Source of the DNA: Geosiphon pyriformis uo1
Lineage: Eukaryota; Fungi; Glomeromycota
Length of the DNA stretch: 64,000 nt
Direction of reading: 5' to 3'
Assembly (NCBI GenBank): GCA_016748015.1
Contig: JAAOMT010000777.1
Location: 314,347 to 378,346 of the forward strand
Shown in pieces: positions 9,128 to 34,400 of the stretch. Every line of letters begins with the position of its first letter. Within the stretch, counting starts at the first letter, position 1. Below the pieces are notes generated by a model. The model ran no database searches and was not told the origin of the DNA. It saw nothing but the letters and a program-made list of their open reading frames with translations. The position numbers and the translations under genes were made by a program.

Positions 9128-9482
9128 CTAAGTTTCATTTGATAATATAACGTTCCCGGAAATGTCTTCTACTTTTTTAAAATACTTTGTGGATAATATA
9201 CCATCTATGCCCTTGGAAAGTATGACTCCATTAGCCGATTCAAAAAATTCAATTCCGTCTATGACAAAAATGTTTTTTTTAATTAAATATAGCCTATTAT
9301 TGTTGTTTAGTATAAAAATGAAATCCACTTTACCAGCTATGGCTTTTTCGAGATCCACAATGATAAATAAATCACAATTAGCACGGACCCCTATTGAAAG
9401 CAAAATCAGTATCCTGATACACATGTATTATGCAGTAAAAGAACACGAATCCACAAGAAACAATAACAACAACAATAATAAT

Positions 9483-9550
<68 letters not shown>

Positions 9551-10084
9551 CAACAACAACAACTACTACTACAAACAACAAATTTACCGCTTTTAACATT
9601 AGGATCACCCCATCGACCGTTAGCAAAGTGTATATGATTTCGACTCATTTTGGAAAGACCTTTGGATTCTAGAAGAGTGAACCGGAATTAGGATTTGGAA
9701 CTAAAATTACTATAGGATAAAAAGTCTTTTGAAATTTCTCACCTATACTTTTCCAATTTGTCATATAAGTACCATGTATAACTTGTGGGAACAAAGTGGG
9801 ATCCGTAATTCTTACCAACTCTAATTGTTCAACCTTGAAGGAATATTTCCAATTCGAACAAAGAAAGTTAAAAGATATTATTTTTGAATATGATCTAAAT
9901 TTAAAAACTCTGGGTCCAACATACTTGAATACTATGGCCTTGATTTGCACGAATGAACCATTTTGAGCCACCAAGCTCAGATACTTCTTCAACAAGCTTA
10001 TACCGTTGCTTATCATTGTTTTGAACAGCTTCTTTTATGTCAGCAAAACTTTTTCCCCTTAATTTAGGTAGATTCAACTTTGAA

Positions 10085-11479: not shown

Positions 11480-12090
11480 GGGCCAATCCTAATCAAAAAT
11501 ATTTTTGTTACATCTGATTGGTTTTTAGGCATACACTGTTGACTATATATATGATAATCTCAGAATCTTATTATCGACGACAAAGCTTTCAAAATATCGA
11601 ATCTTTCAATGAAAGTGTTGATTATCATGACTCACTACTAACCAAATATTGTAAACACCTTTTATATTTTTCATGATTGTTATCAGAATTTAGGCCTCAC
11701 AGCTGATGGACCACTTATAATGGTCGATATACATCAAAAGATTAAACTTAAAAAAAAATTAAAAAAATGTGAAATAATCTATATCAACAAGATTTTAGGC
11801 AAATAGACTTTTAAACATGACACTTGGTTCTTTTTATTGAGTGAAATTTATGAAAACCGAAATCAAAATTATATAGATCAATTTGTCCTAATCTAGGATT
11901 CCCAAGTGAAACAACGCACAGAAATGTAAAATTATTATACGAGATTTCACGTATGTAAAAATATAAAAGAATCGCAAAATATAAAGCGAAAAGGGGATAT
12001 ATATTAACAACCATTAGCGAAAGGAAATTATCGCAGAAAAAAAATATTTAACATGAAAATCTTGGAATCTCCTCTCAATAACGTCAGATG

Positions 12091-12968
12091 TTAGTTTGAT
12101 GCTTTGGTGGGTGCAGTTTTTCCAACTTTGGAAGGTTTCTTCGGTGATGTGGTAGGTGGGACTCCTGGCTTTTCCCCTTTCTTCTTTGGCAACAATTCCA
12201 TATGAATATTTGGAAGAACACCACCTTCAGCGATATGTACATTTCTCAACAAAATGTTAAGTTCCTCATCGTTTCTTATGGCCAATTGTAGATGCCTTGG
12301 AATAATTCTTTGTTTCTTATTATCGCGGGCAGCATTACCAGCAAGTTCGAGCACTTCGGCCGTAAGATATTCGATCACAGCCGCGAGATATACAGGTGCT
12401 CCAGCTCCTACACGGTCAGCATAACGTCCTTTCTTAAGAAGACGTCCCATACGACCCACCGGGAATGTAAGACCTTAATTTCAAAAACACATTTTGCCAC
12501 AATATATTAGTGAACGGGATCCAATATATATATATTATATTTAGGTTGTGAATGAGCGAGCGAGCGGGCGGGCGGATGAATGATTGGACAAATTTAAATC
12601 ACCTGCTTTAACGCTCTTTGATGTTTTGGAAGAAGCAGATACGGCTTTGGCAGCCTTGGTGGCACTTTTTTTACTCTATAAGAGGGAAGAGATGGGAAAG
12701 CATGCTATTAAACGGTTTACTTTTTTTCATTTAATTTTTAATCATACTCAAATAAATTATTGATGCATAATATGATTGAGTAGCTTTTATGATGTTATCA
12801 GTGATAGGCGACTTTTTCACCCGATCGTTTTGAACAGATAAATATGTCTAACTAAATACATACCCGACTTTTAGTTGCTTCCTCACCACTTGGTGTCGGG
12901 TTTGGAGCTGTATTCTCGGCACCGCGAGCGCGAGAACTTCTTTCTGTAGCCTTATCAGTGGTTGACAT
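12091..12968 (-). CDS. Histone H2A variant, ~186 aa, 3 exons (12968-12864, 12675-12603, 12473-12091), with extended N- and C-terminal tails
   Basis: Histone fold [79 protein letters not shown]...GGVLPNIH. Two GT-AG introns join the exons in frame (105+73+383 nt). Confidence 0.93.
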
Positions 12969-13963: not shown

Positions 13964-14074
<111 letters not shown>

Positions 14075-14289
14075 AACACTTTTAAAAATCAATTTCTTGA
14101 AAAGCTTTCATGGTTTTTATAAAAAAATCAATTTTATAAAATTATTTCAACTGACCAAATGATTTTTATAGAATGAAAACGCAATTACGGAAAAACCCAG
14201 GTGATGAAAAGAAAAAAAAAAGAATTATAAAAAAAAAACAAAACCATTCTGTGCCATTTCTAATCTTGAAAATTTTTGATACGATTTCA

Positions 14290-14339
<50 letters not shown>

Positions 14340-16170
14340 TAATAATAATAATAATAATAAAGATTATTTTTTAATTTATTTAATAAAAATACAAAGAAAT
14401 GTGGTATTTCTTATATATACATCGTTTTTCTTTAATCAATGAATAAATTTGGTTAACAATAAGGAAAACTAAAAACACCGTATAAAACACTGTATAAAAA
14501 TGTTGGTTTTTAGTAGTATTCATAAACAAATACATATGCTTTGAAGCTTTAACTTAAAATAACAATATTTCTAAAAAAAAACACTATTAATACTATTAAT
14601 GATCATCAATCATGTTTTGAAATAAAAAAAAAGTAGTTGAAATTTATTATAAAAAACTCTTTTGTACAATATTTTTTTTTCCAATTGTTAAATTTTTTGA
14701 GAATTATACATGTTATCTTATATATATTAAGTACACATATACACATTAAAATTATGGATTATATTTTAAATAATAAAAAATTATTATTTATATTTTATTA
14801 TGTTTTCTTACAAAAAATTACGTTTAAATATTTTTTATGAAATTTTATTCAATTTTACAAATGGTTTTTTGTTAATTTTGGCAATTTTTTTTTATATCCT
14901 TTAATTTTAGTTTTGACTCCTTTTTTTCTGATTTTTAAAAACTTTTAATTAAATTTGTTTCATTTTTTTTAATTAATTAATTAATAAATTAATTATAATT
15001 TTTATAATTATAAATTTTGAATTAAAATTTTATTATAAAATATATTGAAATTATTTTAAATATATTATTATTATTATTATTTAAGACTTTGAAATTATTA
15101 AATCTTTTGTTTTTAATAATAATATATTTATAACAATATATATATACATATATCAATTTAAAGATAATATTTTAAAAAATAATTTTTAACACATTTTATT
15201 TTAATAATTTTTTTTAAAATAAAATATTAATAAATATTTATATTTATATTTATATTTTAATAAATAATAAATAATATCAATATATTAATAATAATAAATA
15301 CAAAGAATAAATAAATTTTAAATTTTTATTTGAATATTTTTTATTTGTATAAAATTCTATTTTTGATTTATTCTCAATTTTTATATTTTCGGAATTATTT
15401 AATTAACGATATTTTATTAATATGATAATTATTTATTTATTTATTGATTGATTTATTGATTTATTGTTTATTATTTTGTTTTTGTTTTTGTTTTTGTTAT
15501 TGATTGTATGATTATAATTATAAATTACGTAATAATTATTTTATTATATTATAAAATTAATTAATCTATTTATTTTATTGTTAATAAATTTATAACTATT
15601 AATAAAAATAAAAATAAAAATAAAAAAAATGCAAGAAAAAATTTTCACCAAATTTTAATTAAATTAAAAAAAAAACTTAAATCTTTAATTCAATTTTATA
15701 TAAAATTTAAATTTCTTAGAAAAAATATTTTAAATATTAAATATTGATTTATTATATAATAATTTGTATTTCATTAATATTTTATTATGATAATATATAT
15801 ATATATATATATGTATGTATTTTGGTTTAATTGTAAAAAAAAATTATATTAATATTTAATTATTGTATAAAATACTTTTAATTAACAATAAAATTTAATT
15901 TAATTTTTACCCATTATTTTATATATATATATATTAAAAAAAATAATTAAAACAATAACTTTTTTAATATTTTATATTAATTTATCATATTATTAAAACT
16001 GAGTTTTATGATTTAAAATTAATTGACAATTTTTTTGGATATGATTAACTAATTTTTTTCCCTTATATATTATTTAAAAAGCCCATTATAAAATTATTTC
16101 TCTTTATAAAATTTTTTTTTTACTTTTATAAAATAAATTTAATTAATGTTTCATTTTAAAAAGTAAATAT

Positions 16171-29617: not shown

Positions 29618-30188
29618 GGCACTGGGTATATGATAAGACTATCCTCATTCCGGGGTTATGATAGACTTTACTAAAGGTTTACATAGAGTAAAAAGAACTA
29701 AATACTTTAATACTATTGTTACTATTTTCTCTTAGATTAAAATAATACTTTAATCAAAATTAAAATATTTGACCAAAAATAATTCCCACAAAAAATAAAA
29801 CTGAAAATCTTTTAATGAAAGTTTTTTGATTACTAATTAGTTTGTTCATTCTTTGCTAAAAAATAAACTTTTTCTTCCAATACAATACATTAATCTAAAT
29901 TAAAAAAGTATCAATTACTTAGTATTTTGACTAATGTTATATTATATATTCTTAATTTTAATAATATTAATATTAATTTCATAAAAATTGGTAATTAATT
30001 AGTTATTTATGTTTTTAATACAAATAAATAAACAATTTTTTAGTCAATTTAAACAACATATAAAATAATAAGTAAACTTTTTTAATGTTATAATAAACAA
30101 AAATTAATTAGTATTTTTTAAATTTAAGAAATAGTTTTAAAACATTAACATTTAAAAAATTTAGTTTTTATATTTAAATTATTAATTA

Positions 30189-30227
<39 letters not shown>

Positions 30228-31418
30228 GTTTAATAAAATTATTAAAAAAATTTTATTGTTTTAAAATTCATGTACAAAATTTGGTTTATATAAAAAATAA
30301 TTATATTATTCAAATCATAAAAAAAAATCCAAAAAAAATATAAAATTTTTTTTTATTCGGTTTTTTTTTTAAAAATATTTTTTTGTTTGTAAAATTAAAT
30401 ATTAATTTAAAACATGTAAATATATATACAAATTAAGAAATAATTATTAAAAACTTTTTATTTAATACTTTTAAAGTAATTATAAAATTGGTTTTTTTTT
30501 AAGTTTAATAAAATAATATCAATTAAATTATAACTTATTAATTTATAATAAAATTTGCTAATTATAAAATTATTAAACCAATAGTTTTTGAATAATTGAG
30601 TTTTTATTAAAAAAAATTAATATATATAATAAATATAATTATATATAATTTTTTTGTTTTTTTAATATTATATAAAAAAAAAAACTTGTATTATTAATTA
30701 AAATTTTATTATATATATTTGAATTAAATGTATAATAATTTGTTTTAATTATAAAAAAAACTTTGAAAAATATTTTTAAAACAATTTTATAATTTAAAAC
30801 AATTTTGTCTTATTATATTATTGTAAAATATAATTTTGTTAAAAATATTATGTTTTATTTTTTTAATACTGCTTTTAAAAAATATTAAATTAAAATACAA
30901 TTCTGTTGGTTTTAAAAAATAAATAAATAAATAAGTTAATAAAAAAACTATATTAATAGTTTTTTAATTTTATTTTAAATATAAATTATTACCTTTTTTT
31001 TTTATATATTTTAAATTCTTCAAAGAAAATTTTTTCAAAAAAAAGTTTTTTTATTTTTCCTAGTTATATTTTTTTAATATTTTTTAAGTTAATAATTCTT
31101 TTGTAATAAACTTAAATACTATTTTAAATAACAATATGTTTAAAAAAAAGATGTTCAAAGAAGCTCTTTATAGTTCTGTTAGTAGTATTTTCTCTTAGAA
31201 AAAGAAAGTTTTTGTGGACAATATTAAATACTTTGGTGATAAAAAAAAATTTTTTTGGTCAAACTTAGTCTTAATAATAATATATATTTAGATATAGATA
31301 GTAAGTTTAATAACAATAAAATTAATGATACTATAATAGAATCTGATAGTAGTTTTTTTCTTGGTTTAGTTGCAACAATTCTTAAAGCTAAGAGATTTAA
31401 TATTGGTTTAAATAATAG

Positions 31419-34400
31419 AAAAAAAATCTTTCTCTTGTTGATCCCCTAGTTATAACGAGAGATAAAATATACTGAAGAAATAATTTTCAATTATTCCTTT
31501 TTCCCTTTATTTTCACAGTTATTTCTTTCAACATATCTTTGTTTATGAGTATAGATCTAGTAGGCTTTTCTACTGATAAGTTGGTGTTACTCATAGAAAT
31601 ATAGGAAATATATTAGCATAATTATTAGCCAATCAGAAGTAAGTGTAGTAAATGTGGAATTCCAGAATTCCTCTCAGGAATTGCAAGATTCCAGGAATTT
31701 CAGGATTCCCAACAAAGAATTGCAGGATTCCAGAATTCCAGGATTCCTCTCAAAAGAATTGCAGAATTCCTGTTGTAAAGAATCGAGGAATTGAGGAATC
31801 CCAATTATGTATATATAGCAGTAGTGTTAGAAACAGAAAAGACAGAATCAATACCACAGAATCCTTAGCCAAGAAACCAATCATCAAATAAATAATTATT
31901 CTATATCTCAATCTACTATTTACTATTAACACTTCATGTTGATAGTAATTGCTACTTAATCACGCTGGAACAATAGCTCTTGATCACAGCTATTGATAAG
32001 ATACTAATGGACCAAATTGCCTTGGCTTATTTTCTTCATTTTCTTTATTTTTATTTTCTTTATTTTATTTCCTTTCTTTCTTTGATTTTGTTGTTGTATA
32101 CTAATTGATTAAAAAATTAAGCACTGAGTTATTGACGTCAAGGATAGCCTGGTAAAAGACCCAGAAATAAGGGTAGGATTTTATATATATTATCGGATAG
32201 CTTACCAGAAGGACATGACTGCCAGACTAAATCTGGCCACTATGCTGAGAAAGAAATTGAGAAAACCACTTGAGGATACAACCACTATCAACCTTATTGA
32301 ATCTCTGTCCATTATACAAAGAACTCCACAACAAAAACCTTCAGATCAAACAAAACCTTCAGATCACTATCAACTGCAATTAGCTTTGAGCACCAAGTTA
32401 AGAGTTTGTGATTTAATTCAACAGCAGAAATAATCACCTGTAACATTGGTGTCTGTTCTGGCTGGGTTGAGGATCTGGTCTGATGTCAAAACCAAACAGT
32501 TGGTGAGCACTCACTTGTGCAGTGCTTCTTACAAAAAACCCAAAAAACCTACTATCATGAACAATATGGTCAAGATATTAGCTGGCTCTCTATTTCTTGT
32601 GAATATAGTTATTAATGGTGACAAACCTGCAAGGTTCTGAGGCAGTAAAGTAAACAGCGAGACAAGTAGCATTAGCAGTATATTAAACTTGGAGAACATA
32701 AAGAATACAGTTGCAGAAGAAACCAGTTATGCAAATTCAAATACCTTGAAAGTCTATAATGCTATGAATGATGCAACACCCAAGAAAATTTGTACCAGGA
32801 CATATGTTATGAGCAGCAAGCCAAAGACTATTTCTTTCAACAACTTGAGCGATAACAATAATGATATTTTGATACTTCCAGTTCCTAAATTTTTCTGGTG
32901 CTAAGCATTTGCTATCTGTTGGGTTATATGTTATAAATAGGCAAAATTTTGAGCCAGTCAAATTTTTTGTATTAGATATTGAGCTATTTGCTGTGTTAGA
33001 CAAAACTAATAGTAATAAGTTAATTGTTATCAAAAAAATTTTTTATCGAATTGATGGTTTTGGAGGGACATCCATTTTTTCAAAATTTTCTAGAATCATT
33101 AGATCTTCATTTACATCTGAATTTAGTTTGTATAAGGCCAAAGAATTGGCAATCTGTGAGAAAATTATTATTAATAATGATTTAAGAAAAGTAAATAACT
33201 ATTCAGATCAGAAGGTGATTGTCAAGGAGATTCCAGTTGATCTTTCCAAATCAGCTATAGAATCTGTTTTTTCTAAGTTTGGCAAGATTGTGTCAATCAA
33301 GATGCAGCTGATTGGTCTATGGCAAAAAGCTTTGGTAGAGTTTGAGTCTTCTGAAATAGCTGGTTTGGTTGTAGCTAAATGGTCTGTTCTTATGAGAAAA
33401 AATTCTGTTTGTGTGGCAAAAGCTGTTAATAATAAACAATTATGGGTTTCCAGAGATTTGCATCAGACATTGTTTTATATCCTTCCAATTGGTACTATGG
33501 CTCATGATCTTTCAGATTTGTTGGAATTATATGGTAGGAAAACTTGCTTTATTGGCTGTAATCCCAGCTCTTATGTGTATGATAGATGTGCAATTGTGTG
33601 TTTTGCTGATGAGGCATCCAAATTGACTGCTATTGGTTCTATTTCAGTGTTTAAAAGTGTGAATTTGCAATGGGCTGGTCTTTCTCTGGCTTGTTGCACC
33701 AAATATAAACAATTTGGTCATATCTCTAATATGTGTTCAGTTGGTGGAAATTCTAGTGTTTGTGGGAAGTGGATGGTAACTGATCAAAATTGGGTCTACT
33801 TGGCTGGTATTTATAAGAAGAAACAGGCCCCTATTGTCCGTTCAGTTTCTTTTGGTAACAAAACTTGGGCTCAAGTAGCTGGTGGTTTCTCTTCTCATGT
33901 GGCTCTTTTGGTTCTTTTTAGTACTGGTCTGTTCCTTGTTGCTGAGACATCTATATTTGCTTCTGCTTCCCCTAGTGACCATGGCTTTTATGGTTATCTA
34001 GTATCTTTGGAATGCTCTCTTGAACTTTTGGCTAACCAGGTCTCTGGTATTTTGAAGAAATTGGGTTCTATAGAATTGGTGTTCCCAGTGGTCACACCTG
34101 TTGTTTTTTCTCTGGTGGTTTCTGTGTTTGTGGTCTCTAGTTTGGATATAAATATGGTTTTAGATAGTGTTTTAGTGATTTCTGTTCCTTCTTCTTAGGT
34201 CATTGATAATACAACTACTGGCTTGAGTTTGAGCAGTTCTAAGGTTTTGACCATCAAGGTCAGTGGTTTGGAATCCAAGATAATGGCTTTGGAAGTATCA
34301 GTTGAGTCTATTTTGGATAAATTAAACTGTTTGTGTTCAGGTTTGAGTACATCGGCTCTCTTTACTTTTCAATGAGTGTGTTAGTTTGGAAGATTACTAT

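Follow-up and report, generated by a model that had tools for sequence, protein, structure and literature searches.

The fungus Geosiphon pyriformis carries, within the 64,000-nucleotide stretch of DNA analyzed here (the window), a gene for a histone H2A that is almost certainly a distinct, conserved, and expressed variant, and that is specific to the Glomeromycota. The variant joins an intact H2A fold to a doubled basic N-terminal tail and to a long basic C-terminal tail of the SPKK type. The explanation that fits it best overall, and toward which we lean, is a Glomeromycota-specific, linker-binding, basic-tailed H2A of fungal descent, and by analogy with plant H2A.W its reading as a heterochromatin histone is plausible.

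Gene, transcript, and protein

The variant gene comprises three exons on the minus strand (12968-12091; Table 1), whose translations, each made and searched singly, join in order into the 186-aa database protein P0003 ("hypothetical protein G9A89_023660 [Geosiphon pyriformis]") at 100% identity; P0003 served as the full-length sequence for downstream comparisons. The first exon carries an R-S-S-R-x-R motif that is nearly invariant in the orthologue alignment, and the second supplies the rest of the N tail, which is basic and rich in S, K, and A. Transcription is evident in the public run X1, which contains 61% of the words sampled from the gene region. A 708-nt transcript contig of this run covers 11861-12471, 12601-12675, and 12864-12885; the two gaps, 12472-12600 and 12676-12863, have GT..AG borders in the orientation of the gene, so that both introns are confirmed. 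The depth of this contig (288) is a poor measure of expression and permits no ranking. A pseudogene is ruled out by the gene being spliced, expressed, and conserved. The gene is also solitary, with no histone gene within 5 kb on either side and no H2B gene adjoining it, and it is single-copy in a six-frame search of the Geosiphon assembly (128 Mb in 792 contigs), in which copy numbers are lower bounds.

The GC content of the window is about 30%. Two of its segments, 14001-16000 and 30001-32000, fall to 11-17% GC, with long AAT-type runs between genes, and the ORFs at 9162-9596 and 14173-14442, which lie in AT-rich intergenic stretches, read as poly-Asn.

Table 1. Features of the variant gene (positions in the window) and other H2A-like loci of the Geosiphon genome (contig:positions)
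Feature	Position	Strand	Remarks
Exon 1	12864..12968	-	ATG 12968-12966; 35 codons; donor GTATGT; residues 1-35 of P0003
Intron 1	12676..12863	-	188 nt, GT..AG, phase 0; absent from spliced transcript contig of X1
Exon 2	12603..12675	-	tatAG acceptor; 24 codons + 1 nt; residues 36-59 and first base of Gly60; covered by transcript contig
Intron 2	12474..12602	-	129 nt, GT..AG, phase 1, within Gly codon of AGL
Exon 3	12091..12473	-	Histone fold, docking domain, C tail; TAA stop 12093-12091; Pfam Histone and Histone_H2A_C
L1-loop region K-K-G-R-Y-A-D	12415..12435	-	Residues 73-79; most H2A.W-like part (H2A.W L1 = GRYAQ, PMC6125630)
Docking-domain signature R-N-V-H-I-A-E-G-G	12220..12246	-	Residues 136-144; clade-specific
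C-terminal tail after LLPKKK	12094..12177	-	28 residues, net charge +5
S-P-K-K	12136..12147	-	Residues 169-172
3' UTR	11861..12090	-	About 230 nt; extent of spliced transcript contig
Divergent H2A paralogues	C639:1599690-1599989 (L010); C650:141581-143781 (L011, L012); C639:1619340-1619567 (L014)		At least four in all
H2A fragment	C639:1598131-1598193 (L006)

The product had been read as an H2A in the preliminary description, an identity that the searches bore out. Specifically, exon 3 alone matches Pfam Histone_H2A_C (2e-16) and Histone (3e-12), both above the curated cut-offs, and the best solved-structure matches of the variant are to yeast H2A (1e-51 to 2e-52). Across the alignment of 23 orthologues, E-x-x-x-x-E-L-A-G-N, R-N-D-E-E-L, and LLPKK are invariant, stretches that we take to be the acidic-patch residues and the LLPKK site. 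At the level of sequence, the histone fold, the acidic-patch residues, and LLPKK are all intact. A structure predicted from the same alignment (mean pLDDT 46.5, pTM 0.17) puts helices at the histone-fold places, and the model is too poor to use.

Both tails of the variant are long and basic. The N tail before AGL measures 58 aa in Geosiphon and 49-64 aa across the orthologues, with a net charge of +8 in nearly every species, while the C tail runs to 19-42 aa at +4 to +6; canonical Glomeromycota H2A has an N tail of 26 aa (+5) and a C tail of 9-10 aa (0 to +1). The N tail had been described as about three times the canonical length. It is indeed long, and the threefold ratio holds only against the tail of animal H2A as generally known, the ratio to the lineage's own canonical H2A being 2.2. 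The extended basic C tail with its SPKK reads exactly as had been described. The sequence of the tails varies while their character is constant, and the core is almost frozen (23-sequence alignment). A pattern of R-S-S-R-x-R, an acidic pair, and a K-rich stretch is kept in the N tail, and a word search with residues 1-60 alone found matches in Archaeosporales relatives only, so that this tail is conserved as a pattern, not as words.

Relative to the canonical H2A of the lineage, the core carries 15 diagnostic substitutions, each present in at least 18 of 22 orthologues, which fall in alpha1/L1, alpha2, the docking domain, and the stretch just before LLPKK. The canonical counterpart in alpha1/L1 is R-I-H-R-L-L-R-K-G-N-Y-A-Q, from which the variant differs (Table 1), and the diagnostic stretch of the variant in alpha2 is V-I-E-Y-L-T-A-E-V. 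In the docking domain, canonical N-K-L-L-G-H-V-T-I-A-Q-G-G is replaced by a stretch with the signature given in Table 1. Every one of the 23 aligned orthologues has His139 and Glu142 in this signature, in place of the Thr and Gln of canonical H2A.

Distribution and the H2A complement of the Glomeromycota

Full-length relatives of the variant recovered by word search measure 168-204 aa, and orthologues occur in all four of the Glomeromycota orders sampled: Archaeosporales, Diversisporales, Glomerales, and Entrophosporales. The genera are Ambispora (from the same order as Geosiphon), Acaulospora, Diversispora, Gigaspora, Cetraspora, Dentiscutata, Racocetra, Scutellospora, Rhizophagus, Funneliformis, Glomus, and Entrophospora. 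Canonical H2A was also found beside the variant in Acaulospora, Gigaspora, and Diversispora, and the two are thus paralogues maintained side by side in the same species. The orthologue of Rhizophagus irregularis (P0030; locus L017:3001-3567) is intronless, whereas the Geosiphon gene has two introns, which implies gain or loss of introns during the history of the variant clade; the neighbors of the R. irregularis gene (Med4, CoA-binding, and LanC-like) also differ from those in Geosiphon.

Among the database proteins, P0034, filed under the plant Anthurium amnicola, is by eye a close match to the Glomus/Funneliformis variant and probably derives from fungal RNA in a root transcriptome, and P0044, with a canonical N half and a variant C half, looks like an assembly chimera. 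Full-text literature searches, with subscription journals outside their coverage, returned no description of the variant; a paper on a Glomeromycota H4 variant is evidence of further unusual histones in the lineage (PMC10878826).

The six-frame searches found at least seven H2A-like loci in the Geosiphon genome. One of them, on contig C661, encodes an intronless H2A of 135 aa whose core is typical of fungi. This H2A has 81% identity to exon 3 of the variant and forms a canonical pair with an H2B gene that lies head to head with it; it is the one canonical H2A locus found in the 128 Mb. Another, on C710, is H2A.Z. The question raised in the preliminary description, whether a separate canonical H2A exists, is answered by this H2A-H2B pair, with the H2A.Z in addition. 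The variant is therefore not the canonical H2A. Nor is it any of three known variant classes: H2A.Z is a separate locus and a distant outgroup in the tree; H2A.X is ruled out by the missing SQ(E/D)-hydrophobic C-terminal motif; and macroH2A of animals is ruled out by a length of 186 aa with histone Pfam domains alone and no macro domain, the two having no sequence relation beyond the H2A fold. Among the remaining loci, C639 holds two divergent H2A paralogues and a fragment, and C650 a tandem pair. In three of the divergent paralogues an intron lies 12 nt ahead of the FPV codons, compared with 8 nt in the variant, and the paralogue at C639:1599690 has GRYAD, VIEYLT, and ELLP in common with it. 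The genome also contains a linker-histone candidate and C5-DNA-methylase loci, and the usual partners of an H2A.W-like system are probably present.

The lack of an SQ(E/D) motif had been presented as a feature of the variant. The motif is absent, but its absence says nothing about the variant, since all Glomeromycota H2As found are without it, making this a trait of the lineage. The canonical Geosiphon H2A (L009:1483-1887, on C661) ends in ...A-A-T-E-V, no Geosiphon H2A locus that was read contains an SQ(E/D) motif, and the SQ(E/D)-hydrophobic motif is likewise absent from all six of the other Glomeromycota canonical H2As retrieved (P0123, P0124, P0127, P0128, P0131, and P0133), the tails ending in A-A-(T/A)-E-(V/A) or a similar sequence. 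SQE(M/A/L) persists in Mortierella and in several Mucorales. Judged by these C termini, the Glomeromycota may be a lineage without a gamma-H2A.X site.

Likeness to plant H2A.W and the origin of the variant

SPKK-class motifs are known from H2A C tails of plants and bdelloid rotifers (PMC3380720, PMC2642717). In the Geosiphon variant, SPKK is internal, 14 residues from the C end, in the context T-S-P-K-K. A survey of its conservation, suggested in the preliminary description as a check on the heterochromatin reading, gave a divided result. The two lysines are invariant in 23 of 23 orthologues, while a proline precedes them in 16 and [ST]P, hence the full [ST]PKK, in 13; the others have STKK, SAKK, ASKK, TTKK, PPKK, APKK, or QSKK at this place, the last in the whole Funneliformis/Glomus group. 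Shuffling tails of equal composition yields [ST]P[KR][KR] in 1-8% of trials, and the recurrence of [ST]PKK at one aligned place is therefore not due to chance. Even so, 10 of the 23 orthologues do without [ST]PKK, and the motif as such may not be what functions; what is constrained looks more like "KK, then K-G-x-K" set in a basic tail rich in S, T, P, and A than like a proline turn.

The H2A.W class of plants is defined by its C-tail motif and by an L1 loop of GRYAQ, and its tail protects linker DNA (PMC6125630). Our H2A.W references were Tarenaya P0056, Apium P0069, and two fern proteins with KSPKK tails. Like H2A.W (Arabidopsis HTA6, HTA7, and HTA12; the SPKK-bearing H2A of wheat), the variant has an extended basic C tail, which in H2A.W is 20-25 aa long at +4/+5, and an S/T-P-K-K motif. 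The likeness in SVKAGL, LKKGRYA, and AEVLELAG that had been pointed out in the preliminary description is real against P0056 and P0069. As an overall claim, H2A.W-like features hold for the alpha1/L1 region and for the length and charge of the tail, and fail for the docking domain and for the position of the motif. The L1 loop of the variant, GRYAD (GRYAE in two Gigasporaceae), matches that of H2A.W at four of five residues and adds a negative charge; GRYAD is found in the C639 paralogues of Geosiphon as well. The H2A.W motif sits at the very C end, whereas that of the variant is internal and not preceded by K, and with its T-S-P-K-K context and its [ST]PKK in 13 of 23 orthologues, the C tail falls outside the H2A.W type. 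The docking domain is of the fungal type (RHLQLA...EELN) with its own VHIAEGG signature in place of the H2A.W states, and the N tail is twice the length of that of H2A.W. H2A.W and fungal canonical H2A differ at 20 core sites. Of these, the variant follows the fungal protein at 8, follows H2A.W at 5, every one of which lies in alpha1/L1 or alpha2, and has a residue of its own at 7; no H2A.W-specific docking-domain state occurs at core positions 62, 63, 73, 77, 78, 83, or 93.

Other lineages offer further comparisons. The bdelloid rotifer H2Abd1 resembles the variant in being a lineage-specific H2A with a long C tail and an SPKK-class motif, in a lineage whose H2As are without the H2A.X motif (PMC2642717); it differs in being an animal protein with an unrelated tail sequence and in replacing canonical H2A, which the Glomeromycota retain. 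The Endogonales, which are plant-symbiotic Mucoromycota, have H2As of 197-220 aa with long N and C tails (P0053 of Endogone, locus L018; P0063 of Jimgerdemannia) that have LKKGR(Y/F)A and LTAEV like the variant and a tail end of x-P-K-K-T-G-G-K. However, they carry 4 of the 15 diagnostic residues, their N tails are not alignable, their introns lie elsewhere, and they do not group with the variant in the tree. Long basic C tails with SPKK, TPKK, or APKK also occur in P0067, P0084, P0101, and P0114 (possibly protist, H2A.X-type), although each of these still ends in SQ(E/D)Y and has a core of the plant or protist type. In each of the four, a single protein unites tail features that mark two different variant classes, H2A.X and H2A.W, in plants.

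Two origins could account for the likeness to H2A.W. An origin within the fungal lineage, and hence convergence with H2A.W, is the one that we consider likely; a fungal H2A gene would have been duplicated before the extant arbuscular-mycorrhizal orders diverged, with the resulting variant under strong constraint ever since. Alternatively, a forebear of these plant symbionts could have acquired an H2A.W gene from a plant, and the variant would be its descendant. Arbuscular-mycorrhizal fungi have a very long history inside plant roots, which would have provided the occasion, and the best land-plant matches in the top 120 of 8000 scored H2As (P0056, P0069, P0086, and P0100) all have the H2A.W KSPKK tail. 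The K, R, and V of the variant recur in all four, its G at R-x-G-R in the two angiosperm proteins, and its GLTF in the Apium protein only. The tally of core sites given above, with 8 fungal against 5 H2A.W states and every H2A.W docking state absent, argues against such a transfer.

The phylogeny (99 core columns, 66 rows, LG+C20 PMSF; canonical land-plant H2A was not among the rows) places the variant in one clade (support 100/97) on a long stem (0.43) and H2A.W in a separate clade (97/95), with a backbone between the clades that does not fix the place of the variant. Forcing the variant and H2A.W together made the tree 6.9 lnL worse (p-AU 0.265), whereas an all-fungal tree, variant included, was 5.2 lnL better than the free-search tree (p-AU 0.705). 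A three-tree test under LG+G4 gave -1937.56 for the all-fungal tree, -1938.12 for the free tree, and -1946.07 for the variant with H2A.W, a sister relation that is 8.5 lnL below the best tree and that the AU test does not reject (p-AU 0.289). The earlier preference for convergence over transfer is thus upheld by the likelihoods, the all-fungal tree being the best, but not by the AU test, which the sister relation survives (p-AU 0.27-0.29), a point on the side of transfer.

Further evidence comes from residues and introns. The C639 paralogue has 6 of the 15 diagnostic residues of the variant, compared with 3-5 in H2A.W. Core identity is 81/99 to the organism's own canonical H2A and 79-80/99 to H2A.W, which leans away from transfer and does not discriminate. 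In the H2A.W gene of Tarenaya, a single intron interrupts alpha2 at codon 71, a position not shared with the variant, and the Endogone long-tailed H2A gene has three introns at other positions than those of the variant; introns are labile, and so they are weak evidence on origin. The repeated evolution of SPKK-type H2A tails in other lineages makes convergence the economical reading. Because the best tree is all-fungal, the C639 paralogue shares more diagnostic residues, and no intron is shared with the H2A.W gene, an in-lineage origin is favored, and we consider transfer from a plant highly improbable.

Possible roles in AT-rich fungal genomes

With its fold, acidic patch, and LLPKK intact, the variant should replace H2A in ordinary nucleosomes. 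Its C tail, about 20 residues longer than the canonical one and charged +5 to +6, should reach linker DNA, and it holds an SPKK-type turn, or at least the invariant KK followed by K-G-x-K. SPKK prefers AT-rich DNA (PMC2642717). By the precedent of plant H2A.W, for which this has been shown, such a tail should bind in the minor groove where the linker is AT-rich, shield additional base pairs, and make the DNA less accessible; we put linker-DNA binding by the C tail at slightly better than an even chance. With its length doubled and a charge of +8, the N tail probably modulates DNA contacts, homotypic pairing, and dimer stability, together with the changes in L1 and in the docking domain (His for Thr, Glu for Gln), and the L1 change may favor homotypic nucleosomes.

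Where in the genome the variant would act can be hypothesized on several grounds. First, on the analogy with H2A.W, a histone of constitutive heterochromatin deposited by DDM1, it could be enriched on TE-rich, methylated heterochromatin, a location that we hold to be possible but somewhat unlikely. Second, it could be a bulk, general-purpose H2A, deposited genome-wide or mainly on genes, that adapts all chromatin to a very AT-rich genome and marks no heterochromatin. An AT-preferring tail would find sites everywhere in a genome that is AT-rich throughout, the transcript contig is deep in the small run X1, and a single canonical H2A locus was found; yet canonical H2A is retained nearly unchanged beside the variant, and paired with H2B in Geosiphon, and neither the contig depth, which cannot rank expression, nor copy numbers that are lower bounds can carry much weight. 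We regard this general-purpose role as doubtful, though it deserves consideration. Third, the variant could be a stage-specific packaging histone that compacts chromatin in dormant multinucleate spores, much as the SPKK-bearing sperm histones H1 and H2B do in sea urchin sperm. SPKK is classic in sperm-specific histones (PMC2642717), and the solitary, spliced gene with its 3' UTR is of a kind with such a role, which we nevertheless rate as improbable.

In its most far-reaching form, the heterochromatin reading would have arbuscular-mycorrhizal fungi independently evolving a working counterpart of H2A.W, in which homotypic nucleosomes on TE-rich, cytosine-methylated, AT-rich compartments are compacted through linker-DNA binding, and which forms one arm of an expanded H2A set that partitions two-compartment genomes. 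Taken as a whole, this proposal is speculative and, in our estimation, unlikely.

Fungal chromatin is usually described with a canonical H2A that doubles as H2A.X, with H2A.Z, and with CenH3, and a review of fungal chromatin, in its passages on H2A and histone variants, names H2A.Z and CenH3 alone. The results herein add a phylum-level fungal lineage with a strongly conserved extra H2A, H2A.W-like tails, and further paralogues, in which canonical H2A has lost the H2A.X motif. Glomeromycota genomes are large, AT-rich, transposon-laden, and beyond the reach of classical genetics, and a variant-specific histone would provide an antibody handle on their chromatin compartments. Further, one more independent SPKK-type H2A tail, besides those of plants and bdelloid rotifers, would make a link between such tails and repeat-rich, AT-rich genomes testable.
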